From contig VRVR01000039.1 in assembly GCA_009859145.1 (NCBI GenBank), forward strand, positions 128,284-192,283: 64,000 nucleotides of DNA, read 5' to 3'. Positions within the stretch are counted from its first letter, which is position 1, and every line of letters starts with the position of its first letter. The position numbers and the translations under genes are program-made. This document shows, piece after piece, positions 38,434-64,000 of this stretch. This stretch comes from Andalucia godoyi And28 (Eukaryota; Protista; Jakobida). The notes beneath the pieces are model-generated. The model had not been told where the DNA came from, made no database searches, and saw only the letters and a program-made list of their open reading frames with translations.

Positions 38434-38796
38434 GTTATGCTTTCTGAACTTTGCATGTGGTACCTGTTGCTTATTTTCCCCAAGAGTCAATCTTCGCAAG
38501 TCGACAGTTCCGCCAGTTCCAACAAAAAGTTGCCCAACCGGTGATGATAGGAAGCTGTCTTTCTTTGTTCGGCACACTCTACTGTTAAAAAAAAAAGATT
38601 TTCGCGCAAGGATTCGAATCCCCGACTCCTGGTTATAGCATCATCATTATCCCCCAGCTTTCCTCACGTGAAATTGTCCTCTCCCGACTGTAACCACCCT
38701 TCCCATCCACTCGCGCATTTCTTTTGTCGCATTCCGTTCTTCTTTCTTTGGCCTTGTTGGCTTATTTGTCTGCTGTCTTTCACATCCGCAAACAAT

Positions 38797-40393: not shown

Positions 40394-40865
40394 TAAAAGG
40401 TCAAAAAAAAATGTGCCCAGCACATTTTCCCCTTTCGAATACACTACCTTGTGCTGTACAATAAATGACGCTTGCTTGGATGCCTGGTCCCTGTTCCCCA
40501 CAACCTCGTTGCTCACGGCCCCCCCTGCATCAGTGCCCACCGCAACCCGCAGGAGCGCTCCTGGCCTGCTGTAAAACCGTTCGACTGCTTCTGAAGAACA
40601 GACGATTTGGGGAAACTCCCGCCGCCCAAAGCATTGCGTTGCCCAGTTTTCCAATATCCAGTTTTCAGTATTCCAAATATCCAGTATCCATCGAGGATTC
40701 TCTTCAGGTTTTCTTGTGCTATCCTTTTCCTTGCTCTGTCTGTTTTGTCTGTCGCGGTGGGCAAACATAACAAACTAAACAACAAAACAACAACTGAAAA
40801 AAAAGAAAAGAAAAGAAAGGAAGAAAAAATAATAATATTAATTGAATTCTCGCTGCGTTGCTAGC

Positions 40866-43800: not shown

Positions 43801-46800
43801 CGTTGAAAACGGGAGTATTGTCTCGGATTCAAGCTTTTGAAAGCGAGATTGCAAAGTTCGCCTCGAAATTCCAGCAGTCCAAGCCTAAAGATGTCCGAAT
43901 TTCTAATCGGAGCGGTGCTGCGGAAGCACTGGGATTCGTGAAAGATCGCAGAAAGGAGCTCGTAGTGCTGATGAATCGCTCCAAGGAGTTGGCTAAAGAG
44001 GCAGAGTACTTCGGGTGCGCAGTCCCGACTTTTGATGATCTTTTCGATGTAGACGCGGATCTTTCGGGTTTGGAGACGTCATGGGGGCTTTTTGACAGTT
44101 ATTTGTCTGCCTTTTCCAGTATCTGGGATGAGGACTGGGTGACGTTTCGCAAGAACATGTTTAAATTGGAAGATTTTGCTTCCAAACAGCTGGACCTTTT
44201 GAAGAAGATGACGCAAGATCGAATTGCAGGACAAATTCGGGATGAGCTCGCTTCTTTCCGTCCTTTGTATGGGTTGCTTCCGTTTCTTCGAGGCGATGGT
44301 TGGGAGAAAGATCACTGGTTCAGGCTGTTCTCAATATTGAATATTCCTCGATCGGTTTCTGTGGAAGATTTGAAAGTATCCCATTTCTTGGAACGTATTG
44401 ATACCGTTGTTGCCCAACAGCAGGCAATCAAGGAATTGCATGCTCGCGCGCAAGGTGAAGTCATGATCCGCGAAGCACTCCTGGAAATCAAAACATGGGG
44501 CAGCAGCGCTGTGCTGACAATGATCGTCGTCGGAGACGCTACTAGAAAGACACCGCTTGTCAAGGAATGGAAAGACGTACTCATGCAGATTGGAGATCAC
44601 CAGTCGCTTCTTGCGACTTTGAAAGAGTCTCTGTACTTTTCTCTGTTTGCAGACGAGATTGGTTCATTGGAAGTCAAGCTCGTGACAGTGGATCGATGCT
44701 TGCAAATATTGAACCCTGTGCAACGAAAATGGTTGTATCTAGAGCCAATTTTTTCGCGTGGATCCTTGCCGGAAGAACAGGGTCGCTTCAACAATCTCGA
44801 TTCCGAGTTTCGTGAGATCATGACGGATATCGCTTCTGACCCATTGGTGCTGACGCTATCCCGTCTGCCAGACTTGGAAGGACGGCTAAAGGGGATTTTG
44901 GATAATCTCGAACGCTGCCAGAAGGCGTTGAACGATTTCTTGGAACAGAAGCGAAACAAGTTTCCGAGATTCTACTTCATTGGAGACGATGATCTTCTTG
45001 AAATTCTTGGACAAGCGAACAATCCAGCTGTCATTCAGAATCACCTCAAGAAGCTGTTTGCGGGTATTCATTCTGTTGTGTTTGACCCTTCGTCTACAAC
45101 CATCCTGGCAGTGCGTTCAGTCGACGGCGAGCAGGTGCAGATCATTCGACCCATTCAAGTCGATTTGGTGGTGGAATCATGGATGTCTGCCCTGGATACG
45201 GTCATGAAGCAATCGTTGCAACAATTGCAAACCTCTTGTTTGAATGGCCCCCAGTTCATGGAGCTTGGCAAGTATCCTTCCCAAGTACTTGATCTCGTTT
45301 GTAATATCCGCTTTACCGCAGACGCAGAGTCGGCGATTCGTTCACGCACTCTCGACAAGTTTGAAAGTCAGGTCCGCGCATTCCTGAACGAGCTGACGTC
45401 TCAGGACACTTCGGCTGACAACGTGTTGGATCTAAAGGTGAAGTCTTTGGTTCTGACCGTGATCCACCAATTGGACGTTGTTCGGCAGCTCAATCGGAGT
45501 GGAACGCGTTCCACAGAGGACTGGCAATGGCAGAAGCAGTTGCGCTTCTATGCGGACAGCAATGTTGGTTGCGTTGTGAAAATGTGCGATGCGGTCTTTC
45601 CGTACACGTATGAATATCAGGGTAACGCACCCAAACTTGTTCACACTCCTTTGACGGACAAATGCTATCTGACTCTGACACAGGGAATGTGGTTGGGCTT
45701 CGGTGGAAATCCGTATGGTCCTGCAGGGACAGGTAAAACCGAGTCTGTGAAGGCACTTGGGCAAGCTCTTGCCAGACAAGTTCTGGTTTTCAACTGTGAC
45801 GAAGGCATTGATTTCCAGAGTATGGGTAGAATATTCATTGGTCTGGTGAAATGCGGAGCTTGGGGCTGTTTTGACGAGTTCAACCGACTGAAAGAGGATC
45901 AGTTGTCTGCCATTTCCCAGCAGATCCAAGTAATCCAAGCCGCCATCAAAGACAAACAGCCTGAAGTCGAATTGTTATCACAGACAATCAGCGTGAATTT
46001 TAATGCTGGTATCTTTGTTACGCTGAATCCCGCGGGCAAAGGATATGGCGGCCGCTCGAAGCTTCCGGACAACTTGAAGCAGCTTTTCCGATCTGTTGCT
46101 ATGACTTCCCCAGACAATGATGTGATTGCTGAAGTGATTCTGTATTCAGAAGGCATGCGACATGCAGAGTCGCTGGGCACGAAGCTGGTGTCCGTTTTCC
46201 GGCTTTCCAAACAACTCCTTAGTCAACAGCAACACTATGACTGGGGACTGCGTGCCCTGAAGACTGTGCTGCGCATGGCAGGGTCGCTGATCAGGTTCTC
46301 CTCTGTCGACACGAAGACCAGATCTGTGGAAGATGAGGCCGAGATTCTGGTGAAGGCTCTCCGTGCAAACACACTCCCGAAATTGACGTTTGCGGATGCC
46401 ATAAGATTTGATGGAATCGTCCGAGATCTGTTTCCAAACATTCGCTGCGTCGACCTGAGCGATGAGTTGCTGGACAAGGCCATCCGAGAAGCACTCACGA
46501 GAAGAGGGTACAGACCAATCGATTCTCAAGTCTTGAAAATTTTGCAGTTGAATGAGACGATTCGACAGCGTATGGGCGTTGTGCTCGTTGGACCGACGGG
46601 CTCTGGAAAAAGCACACTGTGGTCCATATTGCACGAAGCATTAAATTCAGTTGGTCGACAAGTGAAATTGCACACGCTGAATCCGAAGGCGATGCCCAGG
46701 AACCAGCTGTTGGGCCACATGGATATGGATACTCGAGAATGGTTCGACGGTGTCTTGACAGCCAGTGCAAGAACGGTTGTGAAAGAGAGCCTGGATGTTA

Positions 46801-49800
46801 CATCCTGGATTGTTTGCGATGGAGATATCGATCCAGAATGGGTGGAGTCTCTCAACTCGGTCCTTGATGACAATAGATTGCTCACAATGCCGTCGGGCGA
46901 GCGCATTCAGTTCGGTCCGAATGTCAATTTTGTTTTTGAATGCGACCATCTTCGGTATGCTTCTCCCGCTACTGTTTCACGCATGGGAATGATCTTCTTA
47001 TCTGACGAAGATATGCCTGTTGGTGCACTTGTCGATTCTTGGTTCTCCTTCCTCGGTGACAAGGAATTTTTTGCAAAGAACAAGGATTTTCTTTCGAAAG
47101 TGTTTCCTCAGATGCTGCTTCCGGCTGTCGACTTTTTCTTCTCTAGAGCTGGTGGCACCTCGAAGGATATCGAGGTTCGCGCGACTGTGATACCCTCGAA
47201 ATATTGTGTCTTGCGGAACATTTTTTCTCAGTTGGAGTTTGCAATGGCTTCAGTCCCCATGTCTTCGATGACGATGGAGGAGTTTTGCGTTTGCATCCTT
47301 CGAGGTCTTGGTCCGTTCTTTGCAGACTCCATTTCGTTGACATCTTTCTCCAAGTTTCTATTCGACCGAGCGAGCATTCGGTCTCCGGACAGTGCTACGT
47401 ATTATTCTGTCGATTTTGATCGGAAGACCATGCAAATATGTTCTCTTGCTTCAATTCCCTTTTCTGGAGACTCTGCCTCGAAGTCCCTTTTTGTGAAGAC
47501 GGCCAATGTGCAACGAGTCATGAAAGTTTTGGAGCCGTGGCTATCGTCAACCGGCGGTGGAAAATCGAATCTTCCTCCGCCTGTCCTCTTGGTGGGTCCA
47601 GAAGGTTGTGGTAAGTCTCTTGTACTTGAAAATGCTCTGAGCGTATTGCGTGGCGCTGCCTTGTCTGTTATTCACTGTACTGCGCAGACCTCCGCTTCCC
47701 AACTTATCCAGAAGCTACTGCAGACTTGCGTCTTTGCAACGACGACGCGAGGCCGCGTTCTGCGCCCGAAGGAAGGCAAACTTGTATTATTCCTTAAGGA
47801 CATTAACCTTCCGAAGCCCGATCAGTATGGAACTGCGCAACTGGTTGCTTTCTTGCAGCAGCTCATTCACTACTGCGGATTTTGGGACCATAATTTGGAA
47901 TGGATTGGCCTTGAGAAGATCCAGATTGTGGCCTCCATGAATCCTGTGACGTCTTCTGGCCGCTATGCGGTGTCCCCGAGGCTCCTGTCCACCTTCCACG
48001 TTTGCTCTTTGTTGGATCCAGATGCGAAGGATATGGAATTGATCTCATCTGCTGTCTTAGGCAAGTCCCTTGGGCTGCTCTTGAGCTCTTCGTCAAAGGC
48101 AGGCAAAACGGTCGTTGTTCGTCCGCCGAAGCCGTTTGTGGACAAACTTGCAAGTTGGATGGTCAAAGTGTACTTTGCCGTCCGTGATCGATTGTCGTCG
48201 GAAGTTCATCCTCATTATGTATTCTCACCACGCATCATATCGGCTTGGGCGGAAGGGTTCGCTCGGTATCGCGCAGGTCTTTCTGCAGAACTGGAAGAAA
48301 AGAAGTCAGTGGATGAATCCGAGATCGTCGCCCGCTTGCTGCAGGCTGCCATTTACGAAGGCGAAAGATTGTTCAAGGACAAGCTGTCTTTGGACGACGT
48401 CGACAAGTTCTCTTCTTTTGTTGCCAGAACGGTTCGAGAGACGTTTAGTGCTGATGGAGCCGTGAATCCAGATTATGTGTATTCTTCCTGTGCGGGCTCT
48501 GCTGTTGCGTCGTATGATGAAGACTCGGAGGAATCCGAAACTTCTCAAAGCTTAAATGCAAGCTCCCGGTTCCTGCCCCTGTCCAGAATATCGATTTCTG
48601 AATATCGTGCGTTTGTTGCCGATGTTCTCAAAATCGTGAAGAGAGAAGTGAAACCTCTTGACGTGCTTCTGATTGACGAATTTCTTTTGCGCGTTGCAAG
48701 GATCGAACGAGTGCTTTCCAACCCATCGGAAGGCTCCTTGCTGTTGTGCGGACCTGCGGGATGCGGGCGACGATCTGCTGTGTGTTTAGTGTCTCATATG
48801 TTGCGTCTTTCTGTAATGACGCCTCATGTGACGTCTTCCTACGGGATGCGCGAGTTCAAACTTGATCTAAAGTCCGTGTTGTCAAAGGCTTCGGTGGACG
48901 GCGAGCGAATACTGTTCTTGCTGGAAGAGCATCAAATCGTAGACGAAGGCATGTTGGAGTTGATCAATGCGCTGCTTTCGGCAGGTGAAATCCCTGGTCT
49001 GTACTCAAAGGAGGAATTTGATGCTCTTCTTCAATCCTTTAGCAACTCTTCTGCATTTGCTGCCTTTTCGAGTTCATCCGCATTTCCTTCTGTCACTGCG
49101 AGCTTGCATTCGATATTTGTCGCCTGTATCAAGCGCAATGTTCGGGTAGTCATTGTTCTGGATCCTTTACACGAAAAATATGTTTCTCGTTGTCTGTCGA
49201 ATCCTGCTCTGTTCTCTCGCTGCTCCGTGCAGTATGTGGAAGGCTGGGGAAAAGACAGCTTGCGCAGCTTCGTTGACCACAGAGTGGCGTCTGCTATTGG
49301 CAAGCGGCAGGATGCAGCGAAGGAGCCGAGGTCTTCAAAGGACGTTCTCAACACTCTCTCAACGGCTTTTCTTGGGCTCATTCGAACCGCTGCAGAGCAG
49401 CTTACAGTGCAACCTGCAGATGTTTTCCATTTGCTGTCCACGTATGAAGCCGTATTTCATGACAAAAAATCCCTTCTGGAGTCGCAACTGGCCCGTTTGT
49501 TAGCTGGATTGAACAAGCTCAAGGATGCTGCGTCTACTGTCGATGAATTAGCCAAGGACGCGATCAAGAAGAAGAAGGAATTAGAAGAGAAACAAAAAGA
49601 GGCTGACACGGCGTTGCAGGACATCTCTTCTGCGATGGAGACCGCGTCGAAGGAAAAGTCTGCTGCAGAAAAGCTGCGAGTTCGTCTTGAGAAAGATGAG
49701 CAAGTGATTTCGAAAAACAAAAAGGACATGGAAGCGCAGTTAGCTGAGGTCATGCCAATGGTAGAAGCCGCGAAGTCTTCTGTGAGTAGCATTTCGTCTT

Positions 49801-52800
49801 CGCAGCTGGCAGAAATTGGTTCAATGGCTATGCCTCCCCCGGCAGTGCGAGATGTTCTGGAGGCCGTACTCCGTCTCATGGGTATTCAAGACACCTCGTG
49901 GAATGCTATGCGCAAGTTTTTGAAAATGAAGGGAGTCAAAGACCAGATTTTGTCGTACGACGCTTCGTCAATTGAGAAATCAACTAGAGATGCGGTCCGT
50001 GCAGTGTTTCAAGCAAACTCCAGTTCGTTCGAGCCTTCTACTATAGAGCGAGTGTCACGGGCCGCCGCTCCACTGGCTTCCTGGGTCCGCGCTCTTATTG
50101 ATTATTCATACGTTTTGGAAGAGATCAGTCCGTTGACGGACAATTTGAAGCGTTTGGAGTCTTCACTGGCGGATTCGCAGGACCAACTGAAGTCCACTGA
50201 AGAACGAGTTGGCGCGATTGACAAGAAAGTCGACTCTCTTCGCCGACAGTTCGCACAAAAGACGTCCGATGCGGAGAATTTACGAATCGGACTTCAAAAG
50301 GCCCAGGACACTCTGGATGCTGCCCGCAATTTGTTAAACAAACTGGGCGGCGAACGAGGGCGCTGGGAAGAAGAGGCAGACAGTCTCCGGTCGAAAGTGG
50401 ACAGACTTCCAGTTCGAGCGATTGTCGCTTCAGGATTTCTTGCCTTGCTGCCCGCGTGTTCTGAAGACGTGCGCGGGGACATGGTCAAATTGTGGATGTC
50501 TGTCGTGGAACCGGAGCCGAATCAAAGCAGTTTCTCTGGAAAAGACCTTGTTCAGAACTTTTTGACTTCGGAATCTGAGTTACTGCAATGGAAATCGGAA
50601 GGATTGCCTGCAGATTCCTTGTCTCGGGAAAATGCTATGGCCGTTGTTTTCAGTGGAAGCTCGAACGACCGTCGTGTACCTCTTATTCTGGACCCGTCCA
50701 CGCGTGCTGTGGCCTGGCTCAAGGCGCATTTGTCTCTCGAAAAGGGTGCAACTGTGGATATTGTCCGTTATGGTCAACCTCGTTGGTCGACACAGTTGGA
50801 ACTTGCCGTCAGATTCGGAAAGACACTCGTTCTGGAGGAACTGGACCGTGTCGATCCTCTGCTGATCCCACTGCTCAGACGCGACTTCCTGTCTTCACCA
50901 GGAGCATCATCATCCGAGTCCACGACTGCGGGTGTCGCGAGTAATGTTTCGAAGCGAACCGTGTGGATCGGAGACAAGAACATAGAGTATCATCCAAACT
51001 TTCGATTGTTCCTTGCTTGTCGTGCATTGCCATCTCTGTCACCTTCTTTGCAGCGCTGTGTATCTGTTGTGAACTTTTCGGTATCGCGCTCTGGTTTGGA
51101 AGCGCAGTTATTGGGGATTGCGCTTGAGCACGAAAAGCCGGAATTGGAGACGCAACGGGCCGGTTTGTTGCAGAAAGAAGAATCGCTTCGACGACAACTG
51201 CATGAATTGGAGGAGTCGCTTTTAGTAGAACTCGCGCAAGCGCAAGGCAATTTGCTTGAAAACCGGTCTCTCATTGATCGTCTTAACGACATTAAGGAAG
51301 CTGCCGGGACTGTTAAGGCGTCGCTTGAAGAATCCGCTCGCATTCAGCTATCGGTGGAAGCACAACGTGATGTTTATCGATTGTTTGCACGTTCTTCGTC
51401 ATCAATTTACTTTGTCACCCAAGATCTCTCGCGCCTCAGTCACATGTATCGGTTCTCGCTCGAGTCGTTCATATCCTTGTTCAAGGAGGCCTTGCATGTT
51501 GCGTCATCGAGTGACTCTGTGGATGCCCGTATATCCATGCTTGTTCATGAAGTCGTGTTTCGGGTTTCCCAATTGGTGGGGACTTCCCTCTTCCAAGAGC
51601 ATCGTCTTGTGTTTTTGTTGCATCTTGCGAGATCTCTGCATGGTGAAGCATTTGTTTCTCATGAAGAATGGCTGTTTTGGCTGACGAGTAGTATGCAGTC
51701 AGGCTCTCCGGAGTTGTCGTCCTCCATCACGAGTGGCGCGGCTTCGTCTCTTCCTCGAGAATTGGAAGGAAGAGTGCCACGAGACCGTGTTCCGGCAGTT
51801 GTAGACTTGCTCAGCAAGTTTCCAAGCTGCATGAAAGCAGTTGTGGATGCCTGCTCATCATCTTCCGGAATCCAGTCGCCGGGTTCGTGTATGTCTTCTC
51901 CTTATTACCTTACCTTCTAGTTTAACTGTTTCTGTTTTTCTTTCCCCGTTTAGTTTTTCTTTCTTTCCTTCTTCTTCTTTTCTTTTTTTGTTTGTTTGTT
52001 TGTTGATGGAAGCCTTTGTTTCTATACTAATCAATGGTTGCTGCAGCTACTCCATTCTCTCGTGTGCTTGCCGAGGCTGCTGTTAGACCCGATAGAGCAC
52101 TGACAGTTTTAGAGAATGCAGTGACCTCTGTCCTGGGACTGCCGGCGTTGGCAGATTTTTGTTCACTGTCTCTTGATTCGCTGATCGAAGGAGACGCAGC
52201 GGGCGGAAAGGGCCATGCCAGGGCATTTTTAATCATGATGTCTCCCGGTGCCGATCCTTCACGTGACATCGAAGACATTTGCTTTCGAACCATCAAATCC
52301 GCGCCTGTTTCGATTGCAATGGGACAAGGGCAGACTGTGGAAGCTCTGCGTCTTTTGAAACGTGCTGTGTTGGATGGCCAGTGGTTGTTTTTGAAGAATT
52401 TGCATCTTGTCACACCGTGGCTACCTGTGCTGGAGAAGGAACTTTTGTCGTTGCTGGACTCTGATCGATTGCCCGAAAAGTCGGATGGAAAGCACACTCA
52501 ACGGGTGCACCCCGCTTTCCGACTGTTCTTGTCCACAGAGTCGCATGATTCGATCCCGCCTGTCTTTTTGACCTTGGTCCGCAAGGTTGCGTATGAAGCA
52601 CCCCCCGGTCTCCGCGCAAATCTGCGTCGCACGTTAGAATCGTGGGAAACGGATTCCACTGTGCCGTGGCCGGCGTCCGTGCCTCGAAGAGCTCAAATTC
52701 GGTTCACTTTAGCATTCTTGCAGGGTTTGCTGCAGGAGAGGAGGACGTACATTCCGCAAGGATGGTTGCGCTTCTACGAGTTTGGAACTGCAGATCTACG

Positions 52801-54064
52801 AGCAGCGACCGACGTGTTGGAGAACCGTTCTTCATCACCAGGTGGCATCGATTGGAAGACTATCCACGGCTTGTTTTCAAGCGCTGTGTACGGCGGCCGT
52901 ATTGATACTCCGCAGGACATGCGTGTTCTGCATGCGTACCTCCACTCACTGTTTCCTGTTTCCTCGGATGCAAAGTCGTCGTCTTCATTCTTACTGAAGG
53001 GACAATTGTCTGCTGGCCCATCTACGGGTTCTTCGATTTCCGACTACTTGCGCATGGTCGAAGATGCTGTACCTGCGGTTGACAGCCCATCCGTGTTTGG
53101 ACTTGCTGCGAATGCCAACCGCGTGGTGAACATCAACCGGGCGGTGAATGTTGTTGCGGGATTGAAAGTTTTAGTGCAAGGGTCGATATCGCATGAAGGA
53201 AAGTCATCTGGACATTCGTCGTCGAAAGTACTTGAACCGCTGATTCCAATCCTCAAGCAATTCATGCAAACGTCTTCTACAGCGTTAGCAGCGCCCCCCG
53301 GGAAGACGGCCGTGGATCTTTCGCCGCTGTCGTCGTTCATAGAATCGGAGTACAAGTTCTCTCGTGATTTGCTTCAACGAGTTTTCGAGCGAGTTTCGGC
53401 TGTGTTGTCGTCGCTCTCTCCTCTTACTACTACTACGGCACAGTCTTCCAGAACTTCAAACACAAAGAATGATGTGCTTTCATTATGCAGCGGAAACATC
53501 CCAGAGTCGTGGACGCTGGGTTGGGAGGATGGCCCTGTTGGCTCCCCGGCTGCCTGGCTTTCGCTGATTGTTACACGAACGCAGACATTTTCAAAGCTAC
53601 ATACTGCGGGGGCGAAGTCATTTGTGGACATTCCTTTCGAGTCCGTCTTCCATTCCGAAGCGCTGTTGTCCGCGCTTCGACAAGCCACTGCCAGAAAACT
53701 TGGATGCGCACTTGACGCCTTGTCTTTCTCAACTTCATTTTCATCGTTTGATAATTCGTATCCGCTGTCATCCTTGTGGATTCAGGGAGCCATTATTGAT
53801 CACGGCAGTATCGCAGATTGCTCATCGGACTCTCCTGCTGTCGTGAAAGTTCCCGAAACCGTCCATGTCGGCTGGGTCGTTGCCAATTCTGCGGCAGCCA
53901 ATGCGAATGATCCGAGTTATGTTACATCATCTGATGGACGTGTCGTCATACCTTTATTTGCTAATCCGTCTCGTGAGCATTTGCTCGCGGAATTGGAATT
54001 ACCTTGCGAGAACTCGCGGTCACGCTGGATTCTGAGTGGTGCTGCATTTTTTGCAAGGTCATAA
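40866..54064 (+). CDS. DYNC2H1: cytoplasmic dynein-2 heavy chain (retrograde IFT motor); join(40866..51888, 52047..54064), 4346 aa
   Basis: AAA1 GPAGTGKTE/FDEFNRL, AAA2 GPTGSGKS, AAA3 GPEGCGKS, AAA4 GPAGCGRRS (dynein-2-type), stalk and MTBD. Spliced length 13,041 nt = 4347 codons. Confidence 0.95.
51889..52046 (+). other. spliceosomal intron in DYNC2H1 (158 nt, phase 1)
   Basis: GTATGT donor, T-rich body, TACTAAT branch-like motif at ~52025, CTGCAG acceptor; restores the frame into TPFSRVLAEAAVRPDR. Confidence 0.9.
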
Positions 54065-54213: not shown

Positions 54214-57200
54214 TCAGTTTTCATCAAACTTCAGAGTTTCAAGCCGCGAGATGTGTCCAAAATCAAACTCGTTGTCACTGTCGCAAAGCAGATCTTCTCG
54301 GCCTGACTGTTCAACAAGGAGCAGGACTTCCTCAGCAGCCGCAAGTGGAACATCCACCAGTCCGTCGGCATGATCCCGTTCCAGATCGGAGAGTGAAGGG
54401 ACAAGCGAAAGATCCATTTCCGCAGATTCACCAAATTGCTGCGGAATGTGCGAGCTGGCATCCAAAATCCCAGAGTGTTCCCAGTTCCAACAGACTTCAT
54501 TTCCACAAAACAATCTTCCTTCGCCGTTTTTCCCGCAGCCAAAGCAGACAAATTTTCCATCCGCTCCGCAAGAGCACTTGAAACCACTCACGGGTTTTGA
54601 GATCGAATTATCGTTGTCAAAAGTGACATACAGTCGACTTGTTTTCCGTTTCCAGATGTACAAAAGTAGCATGAGACAGATCGAAAGCACAAACATGAAA
54701 ATCGCAAGCAAAGCAAGCCAAAAGAGCGTTTCTCCAAAGGTGCAAACCAGGAAGGATGAAGAACACGCACTCAGGGAGGCGGAATCTTGCGTTGCCGGTA
54801 TAGTGTGAACATCGGACAGAACCGTGAGGTTGCTGAAACTGACCGACATGACTGCGGACTTTCCGTACTGCATCCAACAGCGGTCCGGAGACGGTATGCG
54901 CAAAGACAGTATGCAGTCTACTGGGGGGAGGGCTGTTATGTTCGACACATTGCCATAGTACCCGATCGCTCGAACGCTTCCCACAAAGGTGCAATCCGTG
55001 GAATTGCATCCGGCTTGGGAAGCAGTGATAGTCGCTTGTGACTGAACCTTTCCTTCGCAAACCATTTTGGCAATGAGGGATGCAAAAGATGCAGAGGCCT
55101 CGCCAGCATTCTTCGTTGAAAACGTAAAGTTCTTTTCTGGAACAGAATTGTGCACCGCCCAGGTGCTCTCCGACCACACAATGGTTTTCACCGAGGACAC
55201 GGGAATCAGCCCAGAAGAGGAGTTGAGAGCAACCCACTGCGACTCTGTCATTATCACAAACGGTTCTGGGGGCACCGAACTCGGAGCACATGTCTGCTGG
55301 AAGGCACCGTCTTCCACAGCAGCAACGAGGGCATTGTCTTGAGTAAGTGCCAAGTCCGCCGAAGACCAAAGAGGCGACGGGGAATCAATGCTTGCCGAAA
55401 AGGAACAAACATCCTCTGCAAACAGAAGCGACGTCCCAACTTCCAGCAAGAAAGAAAAGAAGACAGTCTGATTCGCCGCAACATCCGACGCATGGCTCAT
55501 CAACGCGGAAGAGAATCTTCCGCAATCGGCAGTAACTCGAAATACCCCCGAGCGCTCACCAGCATTTCTCAAGGATATGCAGAAAATAGCATTGCTGTCA
55601 GAGGGCACGTTGAGCGAGCAACCAGAGGTCGAAGCCATGGGAAACTGATCGACGAGAGTGTGAATTGCCGACAAAGACGCAACGGAAGGGGAAGCAGGTG
55701 TTATGAGCCGAAAAGGATCGGAGTCCGAAAGAGAAATGCGCGGTTGGTGAAATCGGAGTGCAGAGGTCTGGACCCCTACGCTGATACTGAAATTAGACAG
55801 GGAAACGTTGTCGACGGCAACAACAACTTCATCTCCCGACTTGGTCAAGTGCACATCGGCAGCAGAAACGTTAAAAAATCTGGAGAAGTCGTAGGAGGTA
55901 TTCCGCAAGAGGCTCGCAAGCATACCACCAGCACACGTACCTTGCGGCTGACTGCAAGAGAATGATTCGACAAATCGAGTGTGATCGACCATCAAACCAT
56001 GACATCCTCTTTCTTCACTAGCATTCTTCGGTACCACCAAAAGACGATGTCTCAATGACGGGTCAAGATGCTTCGCTGGAGTCGACAAATTGCAGACGAA
56101 TAGATGCATGTCTGACCAACCCGAGACAAGTTTTGGACGCGAAAAATTCATCAACCGTATGCTGTACAGAGTGGAAAGCGAGGGCTGTGACGCGGTTGCA
56201 GCGCCTACGGCCAGAGAAATAGAGTCATACTGAGGAGACGTCCCGTACATGTGGTTCAGAATCTGCAGCTCCACTCCGAATCTCAGCAGCGTGTCCGTCG
56301 CAATGTCAATGTCAAACACTTCACACACAACCCCGAGATCCCTCTTCAGCCAGTGGAATGTACGGTTGCAAAAGAGACACTCTTGGTTTCGTACCGCGTT
56401 CGATGGGCAGGATTTGTTGGCAAACTTCGAAGCATTTCCGTATTTCACGGTTACCGCGCCATCCGAGCCGATCTGGGAGAGAGTTTCGGACTGCATCAAA
56501 GACATGAACCAGCAAATGGTTGCTGCATCAGATGCACAGCGATCAAGAGCAAGAAAGTATGTTTCCATGGAAGAAGTGTTTGTGATCTGAGCTTTGAACA
56601 CAACACCGCTGAGCTTGAGCATGATTTCAATGGAAGAAACGTCGAGTGGCACCGTGGATGTTCCAGCTGCAGTGGAGTCCGTCCACGGGACAAAAGAGTT
56701 CCGGGACAAGTCGTATATCGTCACAATGAACATCGAGCGATGAGAAAGAAACGCATCGAACAGCTGCTGCACATCGTTTCGGTCTGCAAGCAACGCGATG
56801 TCCGCACCGGATGGGAAAAACGCTGGGTTGTCGATGTAGGCGACCCATTCGCGAAACTCTGTGACGATGGCTGTCTTCCGAAAGCGAAGGGACACCGAGG
56901 GGTAGCCTACCGTGGCGGTCTTGATTTCAATCGGCTGCGCACTAAGAAACCCGTCTTCGCTTGTAATGTTTGGAAACACTGCCAAGGACGCACTTGGTAC
57001 GTGACCTGTTTCCGTTTCCGATTCACCTTCAAAATAAATTCCATTAAACGAATAGTTGGACACAAATAGCCTGGAAGATTTCCAATGAATCGTAAATGCG
57101 TGGGAATCATTGCCTCTCGCCACCGGCGCCGCCTCATGATCGTCCTCCACAGGTTGAATGCCACCGGTGCTGTTGCAGTTCTGACCGGTCTTCAACGAAA

Positions 57201-60200
57201 CAATCGACAAAACATTCGATAACGGTACTGTTAGGGGATGGGACAACGGCAGTATCAATTCACCGCTGCGCATGTCGACAAACACCGGCGACACACGCAG
57301 ATTGGCTGATCCGCCAGCACCGGAAACGTGAAAAGACGCTGTAAGTTTGGAGTCGTTAGCAGACATCGACAGGAGTCGGTGGTCTGTCCCCGCAGAAGAC
57401 AGTGAGACGCAAGAGCTCAATAAGCAGTCTGCTAACAGATCTGCCGCAAGGTAGTACCTGCCGATAGCGTGCCCAGTCGCACCGTCATTTTCAATGGTAA
57501 GCAGCGCCACTTCCACTGACAGCGAGAACTCGACGGAGACGTTCAAGACCGACCCGCTGCGATAAACAGAGAGATCAAAATAAGAGCACGCTTGCTGAGA
57601 TATGCCGCGCTTCGCAATAAACTCCGTCGCGCTACCAAGATTCGTCTTCGCGTCAACCGGAGCATCATCCGGTTTCGCGGGTTCCGAAAACGATCCATTA
57701 TACAGGTACCCGTATATGGCGTAGTTCACTTGCTTTTCCCATACTCCATCTGTCCAAAGGCGCTGCTTCCGCAGTTCAAACGAACGCACTTCGCAACGTA
57801 TCTCACCCGTGAACGCCGCGGACGAGGATACGGCCACCTCGAAAATTCCAGTGCTCGCGGCCGGAATCACAACATCGACTACAGAGGAATTGACAATGGA
57901 AATGCCCTGGGAGCAGGAAGTGTTCATGTGGAAGTTTCCGCTCGCAAATCCGAGATTCTCCAGCTGAACACGGTACAGAGCAGACTTTCCATGTACAGGA
58001 TCAGTAACAGCAAAGGAGGTGGAAACCTCGGCATCTCCAATTACCGGCACGGCGAATGACAGCGACTGGAGACGAAGCAGCACCGATGAATTCATGATTT
58101 CGGGATTGGGAAATTTGAACTGAAGAACCGATTCTGCCGTGCGGAGTTCAACCGAGCAGTTTCCGCAATTCGAGAAAACAATCGATGGATCCAACGAGGA
58201 GTTCGATGCGACTGCAAAAAACTGCATGTTATCTGTAGGAAGGGAGCACATGGATGCTTGAAGCAGATATTGCTCTACAAGACCGCTCAAGGTGGGTTCA
58301 GCAGAGGACGGCGCAATCCGGATGTCGCCATTCTTCATGCTCAGCACATATCTTCCGCTTGGACTTGGCATGTACGCCAACGCAGAAACGGAAGACAAGG
58401 CAAACCCGCCGAAAGAAGAACGGACAAAATGAGTATCATTGCTGCCGATGATCAGCGACGCCGTATCCTCGATGACATTCGATACGGTAGACAGAAACGC
58501 TCCACGCATTCGCAACACATATGGTGAGGTTAACGACCCAGTCGTGGGGTCAAACTGCCAGACATCTGCATACGTTCCATAGTATGACTGGATCAACGGA
58601 TAGGTGCTGCTGGAAAGGAGCTCCGTTGGCGAACACGTTGGTGCTTCGTGAAAAGAAAGACGCAAATTCCAGCCATAGCGGGATGGCTCTCCCGGAACAA
58701 CTGCATATTTCAAGTGGGCCGAGCACGACAGCAAGCTGTTTTCCATGTTCCAAGAGAAGTCCGTCAGGTATGCAATACCAAACTCAATTGCAGATGTGTC
58801 CACAGACATTAGCGGGTCGGACACGTTCACCCACGGCACAAACGAAGACACGGATGAATTAAACACCTTCAGAGTCCAGCCATCATCTCCCCTGCTTGCC
58901 TTGTGCACCAACTGATCCACAAACTGGCGACTGACAACGATCCAGTCATAGCCAGCTGAAACGGACACATTACGGAATGCATGCTTCTGCTGTGCAACTT
59001 CCAGTCCAACTCTCTTGACAAATGCAAGAGGAACTTCAAATGTTGAGTATTCGGGAGCAGACACTGTCAAAGATATCGGATTCTTAAGGGCATACACCTG
59101 CAAATCGACAGGGTCCTGAATACTCTGAATCGTGAGCGGCGCATCGCTGGATCCTCTGCGAACTCGAAATTGCATTTCGATCAATTGTGATGCATTCCAC
59201 GAGCTGACATCGCCACAATGATAGGTGTACTGTGCTGTGCAATTGCGGAAGTACCAGACCGGCTGATCAATCGGGGTAGGTGACCCTGTGGCGGCGTCGA
59301 CTGTCGGAGACTGTGCAGCAGCGTGCGTACTTTCCAGGAGGGGCAGTGGGGAGTCTCTGTCGTACTCCGTGGGTCGCGTTACATTATGCCGCAGAAAATC
59401 GAGGACACCAACAGAATGTACGCTAGACGAAAAGAACATCCCATGCTGAGCTTCAACGAGAGCATCGCTGAGAACCAAGAAATAGGTTTGCGATACATTC
59501 ACCGATCGAAACAGTAACGAAAGATCTGGAAGAATATTTTCAAAATTGAGAATATCGCTCGGCAATATAGTTCTGTTTGTTTCTGCCTCGAATAAGTAAA
59601 CGGCTTTCACTTTCCGTATCCATGCCAGGCAGTCGTCAGCATAGGCAAAAGTGGAAAGCAAACACAATTCTGCAGCATTGTCGCCGCAGAATATGCTGAT
59701 GTTTGTAGAGATGAATGTCAGCGTGAGATTGAAAGTCGCTGACAGAAGACTACCAGGTACGGAAACTACTTTTGCCGTCACAGTGCGACTCCTTGGAACA
59801 AACAAAACGGCGTCCGCGGAATACACAACGTTGGATCGCTCGATGATCACCTCGGATTCTGGGACGAAGTACCCGTTGAAAACTGGAAACGAGACTGCGT
59901 TTTCCAGGAGTCTGGATTTTGAGGTTGCGCTCCATAGCGGAAGACGATCTACAGAAACCAGAAACGAGCATGATTGATAGCCGTATTCCTCAAGAATCCC
60001 TTCTAAAGAGAAATTGAAAATGGCGGTTTGCAGCGGAAGTAATGTTGCACTGCCGGGTTGGCTGACAATGGAAACACCCCGAGAACAATTAGCGATTGCA
60101 GTAAACGTGCCAGCAGCAGTTCCATTGTTCTTAACAGACACGGATGCGACTCCCGTTCTTTGCTGCCCTCTGGATGTACCATGAGAAAAGGATGCTCCGA

Positions 60201-63200
60201 AGGATGCGTCAACAGAGGGTTCCTTGAAAGACAGTAGGGAAGAAGGCAGATTCACAGAGAAATTTCGGGGGACATCCGACTGCCCAAATGCTATGGACAA
60301 ACCGTTTGAGATGGAAAAGCGGCTTGTGTTTGACGAAAGAGTCTCCCATAATGGGAGAATGCTCAACCAGTGCGAGGTGTTGGCGATCACATTTGCCAAT
60401 CGATTCTCGAGACACGAAGCAAATGGCTTGGAACAAAACTCTGTCTGATTCCAAAACGAATTGTAATCGATGTTAACAGATCCGCATTTGCCGTGAAAGA
60501 GACCTTTGGGAACGAGTCTTGACTGAAGAAACGGGCTGACGAGGACGCTGGAGTAATCTGAAGACGGGAACATCAGATACCGATCTGCGAAGAGCCCACT
60601 GATGCCTCCAAACACATCTGAGACACGGACATCAACTCCAGCACCCAAATTGATAGGCGACGACGTCACGTTCGCAGATTTCGAATACTGAATCGCTATG
60701 TCGGGGCCTGCAATCGAGAAATTCAAGGATACCTCGTCAGAAATCGATGGATTTCCGAGAGAGAACACCTCGTACGTTCCAAGAGCACTGGAAGACAACA
60801 ATACATGATGAACAGCATCGCAGTACGGGCAATAGGCATTTCGAGGAGAGCCTCGAGGACACGTGACACCGCGGATTTGCGAATCGGATGGAACCACCGC
60901 CCATCTACAAGACGTTGAACTCAGCGTTCGCCGGAGACTGTCACGGGCAAAAAATGTTCTTACGATAGTTCCATCAGCCATCACGGCCTCAACATTTCCA
61001 GCCGTTGGAGAGCAGGCGATTGTAGAGGCATTCAGACTCCCGCTATACGCGGAACTTCGGGAGAACTGTCTATTGCTGGAGACGGACCCGTTTCGAAGCA
61101 GGGTGAAGCGAGCTGCTGCATTTGTCCACGCGCTTTGAATGACATTAAGCGGGGTGTCAAGGTACACTCTTTCCGTGCTCCAATACATGTTTCGAGGAGG
61201 AAACTCGATGTCGGACTGCACGTGTTCATATGTGTTCGTTAAGTACTGCTGCAGTGTCATCGCTGCAGTTACCTTTGGAGTGGAAGGGGCAAACGCAGAC
61301 AGCGTAATTAAGCCATTCAGTTCGTATTCAACGCCGTCTGCATCTGTAATGGCTGTCCAAGAAACGAGCTTCCCTGGATTCGTGCGATCTCCCAAAACAA
61401 AGGATCCGCTCAGAGTAATGTTCCGAATAGACGATTCGTTAAAGTAAGCGGACATTGTCGAGGACGGTGATCGCAGTGCACACAAAGATGTCGACGCAGC
61501 GCACGGCGATGCAAATGTCAGAGACGCGTTTCCAGCGGAAGGAATGCCGAACAATGTCGAAGCAGGAACATCAAAAATTGGAAGCATGGTTACCGCAGCA
61601 GCACCGACGTAGTAGACATAGCCGACCGACGGAAATGTTTCAAAAATCGGAACAGAACCGAATGTTCGCGCAGACAAAAAGCGATCTGTGGAAATGACCT
61701 GGAAGAATGAATTGTTCGGAAGATTGGAAAACCTAAGAACCAAATCGTTGCCCACAACGGGGAATGTCACAATCGATGTCGGGGAGACAATCGTTTCAGA
61801 TGTTGCGTTCAGCGCTCGGAGGTAAATAGCGGGTTTTGCATACGCTGCGTAGGCAAGCAGAGATTGCAGCAAACCAGATTGGCTCTGCGTGAAGTCCTCC
61901 AAAGCTGACCACACGACAGAAAGCGCTGGACTGGAACGATTGACGTAGGATAGGTACACAGAGCTTGCTCCTCGGAAGGACACCGTGACATCTACGGTTG
62001 TACCCTGAATCACGAATCCTGAGGACGGCGTGATGACCGGAGCTTCATTCAAGATATTCGAATACACACTGTATCCGCGCTGCAGAGACATGTACAGAAC
62101 GGTAGAGGGGGCCAAGCTCGGAGCAGTTGGCTGATATGCCTCCAGTTCTGGAATGAAGTAGCCATTGTCAAGAAAGAATGCCGAGAGTGTACCCCTCTCT
62201 ACTTGACAGGTTAGCAAACTCGGGTCCCATAGTGGTTTTGGACGCACCGCGGCCTGAAGAGAGCATTCGAACCAGCCAGAGAGACCTGCAGAGGCCGTCA
62301 ACAAAAATGAAAAATTACTTCGCTGACTTGGCAGGAGGTACAGGAGGATAGCGGAATCATTTGTGGAAGGCACTCTCGCAGAAATGCCAGAGTTTGGGCA
62401 AGCCAACGACACGTTGAACAATCCGGCTTCATTTCCAGAATTGTACAGAGAACCAGAGACCATCGCGGTTCTTTCCTGCAATTTCACGCGAGAAGGGGTC
62501 AGCACCACATCGGATTGGGCGACTGTGGAGCAACGCGGTTGCTTGATACCAAAAGAAGACCCAAGCACTCTCACGCTAACCCAGGGGTCATTGCCACGGT
62601 GCTTGTAATCCAGTCGCAGAGAGGCTGTTGGAGTATACGTAAACGCAGCACGAGCAGTGCGATCGGTCGTGGAAGGGCACAACGAGTCATTTTGCGGAAC
62701 AAGGTTCCAGAAAGACAGCGATGAATTGCGCTCCAGCATGCTGAAGACATCCCGGAAGCAGCTGTGCACGGGTTGATCACAAAAATTTGCCTGACTGCGA
62801 AGAGTACTCACATCCATGCCGATCCCGTGGCATCCAGAGGCAAACAGCGACTTTGGAACCAGGTAAAACAAGCTGGTGTCCACCGGCTTCGCTGCGGAAT
62901 TTGCAATTCCTGAAAAGAACCGGTAGTTTTCGAGCGGAGAAAGATTCACCGTAAGAGAAGGATCGTGTAAGAGACGGATTACCTCGCCGACAACGTTTGC
63001 GGAGGACGATTGCGAAGAGGACATTACAGACAACGATTCCACGTTCTGCAGATCAGCACAGGACGCACAAACCAACGACACCGAAACCGCTTTGCTAGGA
63101 ATCGCATTAGACACATCCATGTCAAAATACGCATAGTTGGGGAACAAGTCAGCAGCAAATTGGTGCTGGATCCTCGAGCAGTTTGGGCAAAACGGAAGAT

Positions 63201-64000
63201 TTCTCACGGACCCTGCAGGGCATTCCACGACAAACGGCACATCAGCTTCTGCACGCCACGTCTTCGTGGATCGATCAAAGGTATACTCGATGTAAGAAGT
63301 TCCCAAAACGTCGTACACCCTGTACGCGGCGGTGCAAAGTGCATTCGCGTAGTGGAATTGTTCAATGCCGCGCACACTGCTTATGGCATACAATGATCCG
63401 CGCTGGCTGACCAAAGATGGAGACCAGGGCACATATTGAGGATAGCTGTTACTTGAAATCATTACATTGCGATTGTTCGAAACGGCTTGATCGAAGATTG
63501 CCTGCAGGTTTTCAGATGATTCAAAAGTCTTCCTTCCAACCTGCTTCTGCTGATTTGCAGAGTCAAACGGCAGATACATCGCTTCGTAGATGTCATTCGC
63601 TATGGAATGTATTTTGAGCGGGATCAACGTCCTCCTCACGGCACTCACACTGACCGTTATTGTCAGATTGTTTGTCAATTGATAAGCGTCATTCGACGCC
63701 GGGTCTAGAGGAAGCGAGGCGTTGAATGAAAATGCCGTATCTGTACCATTCCAGATAGCAGAATACATCGTATTCAACTCCAACAAAGAGACGTTGTAAT
63801 CCATGTACCACAAACAACCCTGAATTCCTGCTGTGGCGCACTCCCCTAAAGAGCTGGTGACGGAATACTGTTGGACTGGTCTGTTTGCAATGTATTGAAG
63901 CGGCGGATCGGGCAACACGACCGGCGGTTTCCGCAGCGACTGTGGATACAACGAGCACGACCGTGAAGATTGAGATTGCGTGGGCTTGGGCAGATTCGCG
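54214..64000 (-). CDS. giant single-pass membrane protein with four tandem HAP2/GCS1-like modules (5'-partial, >3260 aa)
   Basis: The frame is open to the window edge (the track start at 63951 is a TTG). Repeated HAP2-like motifs (NQTEFCSKPFASCLENRL, QANFCDQPVHSC, YEVFSLGNP, V.NxG...G.F....C Ig domain), TM at ~54650-54730 and a Cys/His-rich tail. Confidence 0.8.
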   Translation of the reverse strand, partial: ANLPKPTQSQSSRSCSLYPQSLRKPPVVLPDPPLQYIANRPVQQYSVTSSLGECATAGIQGCLWYMDYNVSLLELNTMYSAIWNGTDTAFSFNASLPLDPASNDAYQLTNNLTITVSVSAVRRTLIPLKIHSIANDIYEAMYLPFDSANQQKQVGRKTFESSENLQAIFDQAVSNNRNVMISSNSYPQYVPWSPSLVSQRGSLYAISSVRGIEQFHYANALCTAAYRVYDVLGTSYIEYTFDRSTKTWRAEADVPFVVECPAGSVRNLPFCPNCSRIQHQFAADLFPNYAYFDMDVSNAIPSKAVSVSLVCASCADLQNVESLSVMSSSQSSSANVVGEVIRLLHDPSLTVNLSPLENYRFFSGIANSAAKPVDTSLFYLVPKSLFASGCHGIGMDVSTLRSQANFCDQPVHSCFRDVFSMLERNSSLSFWNLVPQNDSLCPSTTDRTARAAFTYTPTASLRLDYKHRGNDPWVSVRVLGSSFGIKQPRCSTVAQSDVVLTPSRVKLQERTAMVSGSLYNSGNEAGLFNVSLACPNSGISARVPSTNDSAILLYLLPSQRSNFSFLLTASAGLSGWFECSLQAAVRPKPLWDPSLLTCQVERGTLSAFFLDNGYFIPELEAYQPTAPSLAPSTVLYMSLQRGYSVYSNILNEAPVITPSSGFVIQGTTVDVTVSFRGASSVYLSYVNRSSPALSVVWSALEDFTQSQSGLLQSLLAYAAYAKPAIYLRALNATSETIVSPTSIVTFPVVGNDLVLRFSNLPNNSFFQVISTDRFLSARTFGSVPIFETFPSVGYVYYVGAAAVTMLPIFDVPASTLFGIPSAGNASLTFASPCAASTSLCALRSPSSTMSAYFNESSIRNITLSGSFVLGDRTNPGKLVSWTAITDADGVEYELNGLITLSAFAPSTPKVTAAMTLQQYLTNTYEHVQSDIEFPPRNMYWSTERVYLDTPLNVIQSAWTNAAARFTLLRNGSVSSNRQFSRSSAYSGSLNASTIACSPTAGNVEAVMADGTIVRTFFARDSLRRTLSSTSCRWAVVPSDSQIRGVTCPRGSPRNAYCPYCDAVHHVLLSSSALGTYEVFSLGNPSISDEVSLNFSIAGPDIAIQYSKSANVTSSPINLGAGVDVRVSDVFGGISGLFADRYLMFPSSDYSSVLVSPFLQSRLVPKGLFHGKCGSVNIDYNSFWNQTEFCSKPFASCLENRLANVIANTSHWLSILPLWETLSSNTSRFSISNGLSIAFGQSDVPRNFSVNLPSSLLSFKEPSVDASFGASFSHGTSRGQQRTGVASVSVKNNGTAAGTFTAIANCSRGVSIVSQPGSATLLPLQTAIFNFSLEGILEEYGYQSCSFLVSVDRLPLWSATSKSRLLENAVSFPVFNGYFVPESEVIIERSNVVYSADAVLFVPRSRTVTAKVVSVPGSLLSATFNLTLTFISTNISIFCGDNAAELCLLSTFAYADDCLAWIRKVKAVYLFEAETNRTILPSDILNFENILPDLSLLFRSVNVSQTYFLVLSDALVEAQHGMFFSSSVHSVGVLDFLRHNVTRPTEYDRDSPLPLLESTHAAAQSPTVDAATGSPTPIDQPVWYFRNCTAQYTYHCGDVSSWNASQLIEMQFRVRRGSSDAPLTIQSIQDPVDLQVYALKNPISLTVSAPEYSTFEVPLAFVKRVGLEVAQQKHAFRNVSVSAGYDWIVVSRQFVDQLVHKASRGDDGWTLKVFNSSVSSFVPWVNVSDPLMSVDTSAIEFGIAYLTDFSWNMENSLLSCSAHLKYAVVPGEPSRYGWNLRLSFHEAPTCSPTELLSSSTYPLIQSYYGTYADVWQFDPTTGSLTSPYVLRMRGAFLSTVSNVIEDTASLIIGSNDTHFVRSSFGGFALSSVSALAYMPSPSGRYVLSMKNGDIRIAPSSAEPTLSGLVEQYLLQASMCSLPTDNMQFFAVASNSSLDPSIVFSNCGNCSVELRTAESVLQFKFPNPEIMNSSVLLRLQSLSFAVPVIGDAEVSTSFAVTDPVHGKSALYRVQLENLGFASGNFHMNTSCSQGISIVNSSVVDVVIPAASTGIFEVAVSSSAAFTGEIRCEVRSFELRKQRLWTDGVWEKQVNYAIYGYLYNGSFSEPAKPDDAPVDAKTNLGSATEFIAKRGISQQACSYFDLSVYRSGSVLNVSVEFSLSVEVALLTIENDGATGHAIGRYYLAADLLADCLLSSCVSLSSAGTDHRLLSMSANDSKLTASFHVSGAGGSANLRVSPVFVDMRSGELILPLSHPLTVPLSNVLSIVSLKTGQNCNSTGGIQPVEDDHEAAPVARGNDSHAFTIHWKSSRLFVSNYSFNGIYFEGESETETGHVPSASLAVFPNITSEDGFLSAQPIEIKTATVGYPSVSLRFRKTAIVTEFREWVAYIDNPAFFPSGADIALLADRNDVQQLFDAFLSHRSMFIVTIYDLSRNSFVPWTDSTAAGTSTVPLDVSSIEIMLKLSGVVFKAQITNTSSMETYFLALDRCASDAATICWFMSLMQSETLSQIGSDGAVTVKYGNASKFANKSCPSNAVRNQECLFCNRTFHWLKRDLGVVCEVFDIDIATDTLLRFGVELQILNHMYGTSPQYDSISLAVGAATASQPSLSTLYSIRLMNFSRPKLVSGWSDMHLFVCNLSTPAKHLDPSLRHRLLVVPKNASEERGCHGLMVDHTRFVESFSCSQPQGTCAGGMLASLLRNTSYDFSRFFNVSAADVHLTKSGDEVVVAVDNVSLSNFSISVGVQTSALRFHQPRISLSDSDPFRLITPASPSVASLSAIHTLVDQFPMASTSGCSLNVPSDSNAIFCISLRNAGERSGVFRVTADCGRFSSALMSHASDVAANQTVFFSFLLEVGTSLLFAEDVCSFSASIDSPSPLWSSADLALTQDNALVAAVEDGAFQQTCAPSSVPPEPFVIMTESQWVALNSSSGLIPVSSVKTIVWSESTWAVHNSVPEKNFTFSTKNAGEASASFASLIAKMVCEGKVQSQATITASQAGCNSTDCTFVGSVRAIGYYGNVSNITALPPVDCILSLRIPSPDRCWMQYGKSAVMSVSFSNLTVLSDVHTIPATQDSASLSACSSSFLVCTFGETLFWLALLAIFMFVLSICLMLLLYIWKRKTSRLYVTFDNDNSISKPVSGFKCSCGADGKFVCFGCGKNGEGRLFCGNEVCWNWEHSGILDASSHIPQQFGESAEMDLSLVPSLSDLERDHADGLVDVPLAAAEEVLLLVEQSGREDLLCDSDNEFDFGHISRLETLKFDEN

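Follow-up and report, generated by a model that had tools for sequence, protein, structure and literature searches.

A giant reading frame with four repeated modules

The window analysed here is a stretch of 64,000 nucleotides from contig VRVR01000039.1 of the jakobid Andalucia godoyi And28, and its last part is occupied by a giant gene whose product, P0001, is very probably a membrane protein with four tandem modules homologous to the ectodomain of HAP2/GCS1. HAP2/GCS1, the ancestral gamete fusogen of eukaryotes, is the cellular counterpart of the viral class II fusion proteins. The gene is an open reading frame on the minus strand (54214..64000) with its stop codon at 54214-54216. Over positions 54214..63999 it has 3261 codons without a stop, and the frame is still open at the end of the window; the database model runs 53 codons past this point, giving a protein of 3314 amino acids with 53 N-terminal residues more than the reading frame in the window. 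The database entry for P0001 carries a precomputed match to the Pfam family HAP2-GCS1 (PF10699).

Along this one chain four homologous modules recur with a period of about 725-795 amino acids, and they are followed by a weak domain III (DIII)-like block, one transmembrane helix and an acidic tail. All of these features are on the minus strand and are given here from the N-terminus onwards. A segment upstream of module 1 (63712..63999, P0001 residues 54-149) comes first, the true N-terminus and signal peptide lying outside the window. Module 1 (62089..63711, residues 150-690) is a HAP2-like ectodomain that bears CPAGSVRNLPFCPNC, the pattern LVPK...C...C..P..SC and, closing with PLW and NGYF, a DIII-like block. 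Spacer domain 1-2 (61354..62088, residues 691-935) separates it from module 2 (59800..61353, residues 936-1453), which is the best conserved of the four, and spacer domain 2-3 (59122..59799, residues 1454-1679) leads on to module 3 (57622..59121, residues 1680-2179), a degenerate HAP2-like unit that keeps a conserved arginine and the DIII block. After spacer 3-4 (56875..57621, residues 2180-2428), for which no similarity to the other spacers was detected, comes module 4 (55234..56874, residues 2429-2975), in which all of the landmarks are present. The chain then continues through an extra, weakly DIII-like (immunoglobulin (Ig)-like) block by the membrane (54754..55233, residues 2976-3135) to the single transmembrane helix (54658..54732, residues ~3143-3167) and a cytoplasmic tail of 144 amino acids (54217..54648), within which lies a Cys/His motif (54448..54576).

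A motif search recovered, at the coordinates given there, the landmarks from which a first-pass annotation of this DNA had recognised the modules, including the decay of the RN..CxxC motif in module 3. The motif C-P-x5-R-N-x2/3-C-x2-C is found at 63178-63225 in module 1, 60820-60864 in module 2 and 56368-56412 in module 4, and VPK...C...C..P..[ST]C at ~62758-62862, 60412-60516 and 55933-56034 in the same three modules. The block N-x-G-x3-G-x-F...C...C...[PR]LW is present in all four, with its LW at ~62235, 59940, 57762 and 55374, so that equivalent positions are spaced 765, 726 and 796 residues apart. In the multiple alignment, the DIII cysteine pair is likewise kept in each module. The signature C-x16/17-C-x2-P-x2-[ST]-C, which belongs to domain II and includes the ij loop, has all three of its cysteines in modules 1, 2 and 4; module 3 keeps only the middle one and has also lost the CxxC.

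The modules are ancient duplicates

Similarity between the modules was assessed by Smith-Waterman alignment against 100 shuffles and is far above chance. The highest z-score, 30 over ~500 aligned amino acids, was obtained for modules 1 and 2, followed by 22 for modules 2 and 4 and 17.5 for modules 1 and 4; the comparisons with module 3 gave 10.5 (module 2), 6.3 (module 4) and 6.0 (module 1). A blastp search of the giant protein against itself returned no internal matches, and Smith-Waterman alignment with shuffles was needed to reveal the repeat. No repeat was found at the DNA level and identity between the modules is ~21-27%, from which we conclude that the duplications are ancient.

It can be seen from the spacers that more than the ectodomain was copied. 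Homology links spacer 1-2 with spacer 2-3 (hhalign 92.9%, E 3.7e-7), and the duplicated unit therefore consisted of spacer plus HAP2 ectodomain for at least two of the copies. When the spacers were compared with the N-terminal domains of single-module relatives no match was found, the pairing of spacers 1-2 and 2-3 being the only one. The extra block by the membrane, which the first-pass annotation had called Ig-like, does show similarity to DIII, but the similarity is weak: its Smith-Waterman z-score against module 4 was 3.3, and hhalign gave 60% (E 8e-5) against a DIII-domain alignment.

Relationship of the modules to HAP2

The gathering score of Pfam HAP2-GCS1 is 27.4 bits. The whole giant protein scored 68.7 bits (E 4.9e-19) and module 2 exceeded the cutoff by itself, with 48.3-49.9 bits, while module 1 by itself remained under it at 17.1 bits (E 0.002). 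Searched against the PDB with phmmer, the protein matched Arabidopsis HAP2 (5ow3) via module 2 (E 1.3e-5). A profile built from the four modules of the window had three PDB entries below E=1 and all were HAP2 ectodomains, namely those of T. cruzi (5ow4, E 2.4e-4, aligned from domain II through DIII), Arabidopsis (5ow3, E 1.1e-3) and Cyanidioschyzon (7s0k, E 3.7e-3). Ortholog-pair profiles of modules 1, 3 and 4 gave no HAP2 match in the PDB.

In a full HMMER search of 1.84 billion representative proteins the module profile gave 24 matches at E<=1e-3. A Pfam scan of these identified 18 of 21 alignment members as HAP2-GCS1, and the named matches include 'protein hapless 2' of Anaeramoeba ignava and a 'Male gamete fusion factor'. 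Word-indexed homology searches with the whole protein, with the four-module alignment and with the 21-sequence alignment returned nothing beyond the protein itself.

Each module was also compared by hhalign with an alignment of 16 single-module HAP2 ectodomains, over ~390-410 of the 443 template columns; the template proteins had been picked by a profile built from the modules, and the resulting values, 99.5-99.7% for module 1, 99.9-100% for module 2, 98.8-99.1% for module 4 and 97.9% for module 3 when paired with its ortholog, are to be read with this in mind. Pairwise Smith-Waterman alignment found each module significantly similar to at least one single-module HAP2 verified by Pfam, as with module 4 and protein P0006 (z=21.6) or module 3 and the Heterostelium protein (z=7.7). 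Judged by homology, all four modules derive from the HAP2 ectodomain and module 3 is the most eroded. These Pfam, hhalign and PDB profile results, together with the alignment scores between modules, bear out the proposal of the first-pass annotation that one giant protein contains four tandem HAP2/GCS1 modules; the protein is probably a type I membrane protein, and we regard the architecture and homology as described as very probable.

Further proteins, P0014 (archaeal proteins from metagenome-assembled genomes, Thermoplasmata/Nanopusillaceae, that bear the name 'DUF499 domain-containing protein') and P0020, matched the four-module profile only through 3-5 tandem DIII-like copies. These repeats may be CARDB-like Ig repeats.

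A collinear four-module ortholog

The top non-self match in the search of 1.84 billion proteins, and the one giant ortholog that it found, was P0002, an unnamed protein of 3872 amino acids encoded on an 18.7-kb Logan assembly contig of a public sequencing run. The module profile matches it in four stretches, at residues 416-849, 1198-1671, 2179-2501 and ~2989-3469. Like P0001, P0002 has four HAP2-like modules with the spacers kept, an extra membrane-proximal block, one transmembrane helix and the tail motif CxCG-x7-C-x2-C-x7/8-C-x4-CWNW-x-HSG. Unlike P0001, it has a clear signal peptide and an extra N-terminal domain of ~240 amino acids. As P0002 reaches ~160 residues further in the N-terminal direction, the P0001 model may be missing an upstream exon or start. 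P0002 is rich in Ala and Ser, which suggests a high-G+C genome.

The two proteins are ~25% identical. BLAST aligned them collinearly, residues 538-1486 of P0001 against 716-1726 of P0002 (215 bits), a region that starts in module 1 with DIII, crosses the spacer and includes the entire module 2. In Smith-Waterman comparisons the position-matched pairs scored best in their rows, with 364 for modules 2 and 2', 87 for modules 3 and 3' and 109 for modules 4 and 4' (primes denoting P0002). The junction between module 1 and its spacer, DNGY[FL]IPELEAY, is nearly identical in both. We conclude from the collinearity and the pairing of modules by position that the four-module layout predates the split of the two organisms and is under selection. 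Loss of the signature cysteines has followed the lineages: in P0001 it affects module 3, and in P0002 modules 1' and 4', module 3' keeping the signature; module 2 is intact in both proteins. Pattern scans of metagenome contigs with the ortholog pairs of modules 1 and 2 found no further relatives.

A short, polar domain II tip

Fedry et al. (PMC6089408) define the domain II tip of HAP2 by three features, namely cysteines conserved at seven positions, a salt bridge between Glu and Arg, and hydrophobic insertion motifs that vary. The salt bridge joins an invariant Arg in the cd connection to a Glu of strand b (PMC6089408). All four modules have an arginine at the position of the cd connection (VRN, PRN, SRY and VRN, in an alignment whose N-terminal part is unreliable). 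The surrounding tip has the form C...RN..CxxC, with three cysteines, as against the five of the canonical CCxC...R.N..C...HC, and one or two cysteines lie upstream of it. Some five polar residues (for example PRGSP) run from the first cysteine to the arginine, and ~8 to a conserved His.

The multiple alignment splits HAP2 proteins into two groups by this tip. In the canonical group it reads GFCCxC, a loop of 9-14 residues, R-x-N, C, a further loop and AHCLR. In the short-tip group there is a single Cys, ~5 polar residues, R-N, C-x-x-C and His, and an LW motif follows the second DIII cysteine. To this second group belong all eight modules of P0001 and P0002, Heterostelium PPL_05275, an Acytostelium protein, the Anaeramoeba HAP2 and several environmental sequences. 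On this alignment the modules are members of a divergent HAP2 clade with the minimal polar tip C-P-x-G-S-x-R-N-x-x-C-P-x-C.

Membrane topology and cytoplasmic tail

The first-pass annotation had placed a transmembrane helix and a cytoplasmic tail after the last block, and one helix and a tail of 144 residues are indeed present. N-glycosylation sequons (N-x-[ST]) number 70 in the ectodomain, compared with 30.8 +/- 4.9 in shuffled sequences (z=8.1), and there are none in the tail, which is the pattern expected of a type I surface glycoprotein. Within the internal modules there is neither a signal peptide nor a transmembrane helix. The tail is acidic, with 27 Asp and Glu to 12 Lys and Arg, and its only basic stretch is the juxtamembrane KRKTSR.

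The Cys/His motif of the tail, C-x-C-G-x7-C-x2-C-x8-C-x4-C-W-N-W-x-H-S-G...H, is common to P0001, P0002 and Heterostelium album PPL_05275. It had no match in Pfam or the PDB, and looks like a two-zinc finger.

Genomic neighbourhood

The window is eukaryotic, compact and intron-poor, with a G+C content of ~49%, genes on both strands and intergenic distances that are often below 100 bp. Ordinary eukaryotic housekeeping and ciliary genes surround the giant reading frame, and include those for a DUF4455/4456 protein (1158-4376, plus strand), PIP5K (6795-8522, minus), Rad4/XPC (28169-30502, minus), a C9orf72-like protein (33932-35683, minus) and an EngA/Der-type double GTPase (36919-38577, minus), in addition to a WD40-RING protein and a dynein heavy chain. 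Scanning the 64-kb window against Rfam and for tRNA genes found nothing.

The dynein heavy chain is encoded on the plus strand in two open reading frames, 40842-51920 and 52034-54064. The gap between them (~51889-52045, ~155 nucleotides) has GTATGT at its 5' end and TACTAAT near its 3' end, followed by a pyrimidine tract and CAG; it is probably a spliceosomal intron, its signals resembling those of yeast. The C-terminal part of the dynein is best matched by the cytoplasmic dynein-2 (intraflagellar transport) heavy chain (4rh7/6rla, E 2.5e-85), which indicates that the organism builds cilia.

A second giant open reading frame on the plus strand (9212-18067) codes for 2951 amino acids without a Pfam match. 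Its product is rich in Ser (16.8%), Gly (11.6%) and Val (10.6%). A single transmembrane-like helix, ~200 residues in from the N-terminus, precedes an extended Ser-rich stretch of beta-like appearance, and the product may likewise be a large surface protein.

A candidate gamete fusion protein

The explanation that we favour as a whole is that P0001 is an intact four-module HAP2-derived surface protein acting in gamete fusion, and we give this a probability of about 0.6. The functional part taken by itself, a role in gamete membrane engagement or fusion, stands at even odds at best. In this proposal the gene product would be one intact, heavily N-glycosylated, single-pass type I surface protein, whose ectodomain would go back to an entire HAP2/GCS1 (fusexin) ectodomain unit that was multiplied within the gene, long ago, to four copies; for at least two of these, the duplicated unit took in the upstream spacer domain of ~230-250 amino acids. 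The protein would be present uncleaved on mating-competent cells and would work in the engagement and fusion of gamete membranes. The membrane-distal part, module 1, spacer and module 2, is the most constrained and would do the HAP2-type work of oligomerisation and of contact with the partner membrane or a partner protein. Modules 3 and 4, which are faster evolving and partly cysteine-depleted, would together with the extra Ig-like block serve mainly as a long stalk. Since the tips have no hydrophobic loops and the best-conserved modules lie far from their own anchor, a bilateral or partner-assisted mode like that of EFF-1 would be likelier than direct loop insertion.

A number of observations weigh against this proposal or against the assignments beneath it. 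When searched singly, modules 3 and 4 had no match in Pfam, and module 3 fell to 16.9% in hhalign when it was not paired with its ortholog. A neighbour-joining tree placed all modules together within the short-tip group, but the bootstrap value was 38% and the tree was poorly resolved. AlphaFold2 models made from four-row alignments had a mean predicted local distance difference test (pLDDT) score of 35.7 for module 2 and 36.4 for module 1, and gave no structural confirmation of domains I and II (DI and DII). In its favour, the DIII-like block of modules 1 and 2, alone among the parts, did reach a pLDDT of 60-80, as a moderately confident beta-sandwich. Foldseek matched this block to generic Ig-like folds; P. 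berghei HAP2 domain 3 (7lr3_D, TMt 0.55) and Fsx1 of archaea were among them but were not placed above unrelated ones. As the models are of low confidence, the class II fold put forward by the first-pass annotation rests on homology, from which the modules would be expected to adopt the three-domain arrangement of a DI beta-barrel, an elongated DII and an Ig-like DIII.

Other features depart from what is expected of a HAP2 fusogen. The module tips have fewer than the seven cysteines of HAP2, and the alignment shows no hydrophobic stretch at the domain II tip of the modules that could represent a fusion loop or amphipathic helix. The tail is acidic where that of HAP2 is a basic, Lys/Arg-rich cytoplasmic domain. 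The best-conserved modules lie ~1700-2500 residues from the transmembrane helix, which is a misfit with the canonical hairpin that brings fusion loops to their own anchor. Finally, the annotated N-terminus of P0001 (residues 1-111, of which 1-53 are beyond window position 64000) has no convincing signal peptide.

A more specific form of the fusion hypothesis is that P0001 and P0002 represent a conserved family of single-chain four-module fusexins of a protist lineage, whose tandem class II modules would work in concert to join gamete membranes without hydrophobic loops. They might form four stacked inter-chain trimers, or else one intrachain pseudo-oligomer that folds back step by step and thereby shortens a very long tether. 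We put this forward tentatively, as it is doubtful on present evidence.

Several of the points against a fusion role would be accounted for if the HAP2 fold had been repurposed and now served, in repeated copies, a structural or adhesive purpose in a giant surface protein (an adhesin, a cell-coat component or a recognition protein) that is no longer fusogenic. The cd connections are short and polar with no hydrophobic fusion loops, the tail is acidic, most of the modules are distant from the membrane anchor, and the signature cysteines are gone from module 3 of P0001 and from modules 1' and 4' of P0002. The extra Ig-like block by the membrane points the same way, as does the Heterostelium relative with its several DIII-like repeats. 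However, module 2 retains all HAP2 landmarks in both organisms and is the most constrained (Smith-Waterman score 364), EFF-1 fuses membranes although it has no hydrophobic loops, and to our knowledge gamete interaction and fusion is the only role of the HAP2 family, that of dictyostelid HgrB included. We consider such a repurposed scaffold unlikely, though it accounts for much of what is seen.

It is improbable that P0001 is an intramolecular pseudo-oligomer, in which a single chain forms a pre-assembled fusogen because three or all four of its modules pack side by side in the manner of protomers in a class II post-fusion trimer. With spacers of ~230-250 amino acids, adjacent modules could be placed parallel to one another, and the module number is kept in two distant organisms, but that number is four and not three, and ~20-25% identity between modules together with lineage-specific decay fits poorly with equivalent protomers. 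The scaffold and the pseudo-oligomer had both been raised by the first-pass annotation, as had a processed polyprotein. A polyprotein, from which cleavage between modules would free several HAP2 units, is suggested by the modular layout and by isolated basic sites such as PRSRT after module 2. With a single transmembrane helix and at most one signal peptide, however, modules 1-3 would be freed as soluble proteins rather than membrane-anchored ones; the equivalent boundaries of P0002 share no basic cleavage motif, and the conserved junction DNGY[FL]IPELEAY reads as ordinary sequence rather than a protease site. For these reasons we judge this very improbable. There is a negligible chance that the locus is an artefact, whether through mis-assembly, through the erroneous fusion of four adjacent HAP2 genes in the gene model, or because it is a pseudogene in decay: the annotated N-terminus of P0001 may be incomplete, but 3261 stop-free codons in DNA of 49% G+C, ~22% module identity with no DNA repeat (hence no assembly collapse), internal modules devoid of signal peptides or transmembrane helices and an independent collinear ortholog all speak against it.

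If the gamete fusion proposal is right, the gene for P0001 would be a candidate for involvement in sex, in an organism that may have no known sexual cycle, and cooperating tandem modules, if real, would be a new mechanical solution in the class II fusogen superfamily. Four linked and differently decayed copies in two distant organisms allow one to ask which features of the fold its function needs. P0001 and P0002 also raise the questions of whether protomers must be separate chains and of how HAP2 proteins with polar tips engage the partner membrane.

Comparison with known fusexins

We know of no described HAP2 member that departs from one ectodomain per chain acting through trimerisation of separate chains. 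The first-pass annotation had likewise known of no tandem HAP2 protein, and our searches of the open literature, the main reviews and the Fsx1 paper included, agree with this, as no description of tandem, multiple or repeated HAP2 domains was found; in public data the unnamed ortholog P0002 does exist. By homology P0001 is clearly a HAP2-family member, but with four ectodomains in its chain it is an exception to the rule for the family, and its reduced tip is that of a clade that has been little studied. Its architecture would surprise a cell-fusion specialist.

With canonical HAP2/GCS1 (Chlamydomonas 5mf1/6e18/6dbs, Arabidopsis 5ow3, T. cruzi 5ow4 and Cyanidioschyzon 7s0k) the modules share the PF10699 signature (C...C..P..SCL.NQL-like), an Ig-like DIII with a cysteine pair and, by alignment, an Arg in the cd connection; the layout is probably type I in both, and a profile that includes the modules matches all of the canonical HAP2 structures at E 1e-36 to 1e-45. 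Whereas canonical HAP2 has a single ectodomain in each chain, P0001 has four, split by folded spacer domains. At its tip one Cys stands where canonical HAP2 has CCxC, and RN is followed by CxxC; its tail differs in being acidic and bearing the Cys/His motif.

P0001 is closer to the little-studied short-tip HAP2 proteins of dictyostelids and Anaeramoeba, whose clade it extends. The dictyostelid proteins, Heterostelium album PPL_05275 (1590 amino acids) and Acytostelium SAMD00019534_040450, have the short-tip C-P-x-G-S-x-R-N and the LW after DIII that are seen in the modules, and PPL_05275 in addition has the P0001-type tail motif and extra DIII-like repeats ahead of its transmembrane helix; each has one HAP2 module in contrast to the four of P0001. 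They are possibly of the Dictyostelium HgrB type. Mating in Dictyostelium requires each of its two HAP2 homologs, of which HgrB is only weakly similar (PMC4910948). The Anaeramoeba ignava 'protein hapless 2' (KAJ5070230.1) also has the short tip, scores 69 bits against Pfam HAP2-GCS1 and aligns with module 2 (Smith-Waterman z=21.6) and module 4 (z=9.8), but it differs from P0001 in its single module and its long, unrelated cytoplasmic tail.

The remaining members of the fusexin superfamily are more distant. Archaeal Fusexin1 (Fsx1, 7p4l) and nematode EFF-1/AFF-1 are, unlike P0001, single-module proteins, and their specific sequence relationship to it does not extend beyond DIII; Fsx1 is matched by the family profile at E 2.8e-5. 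Between its DIII and the membrane Fsx1 carries an additional domain IV, analogous to the extra block of P0001, and EFF-1, which acts bilaterally and fuses membranes without hydrophobic fusion loops, may serve by analogy as a model for the polar tips of the P0001 modules.

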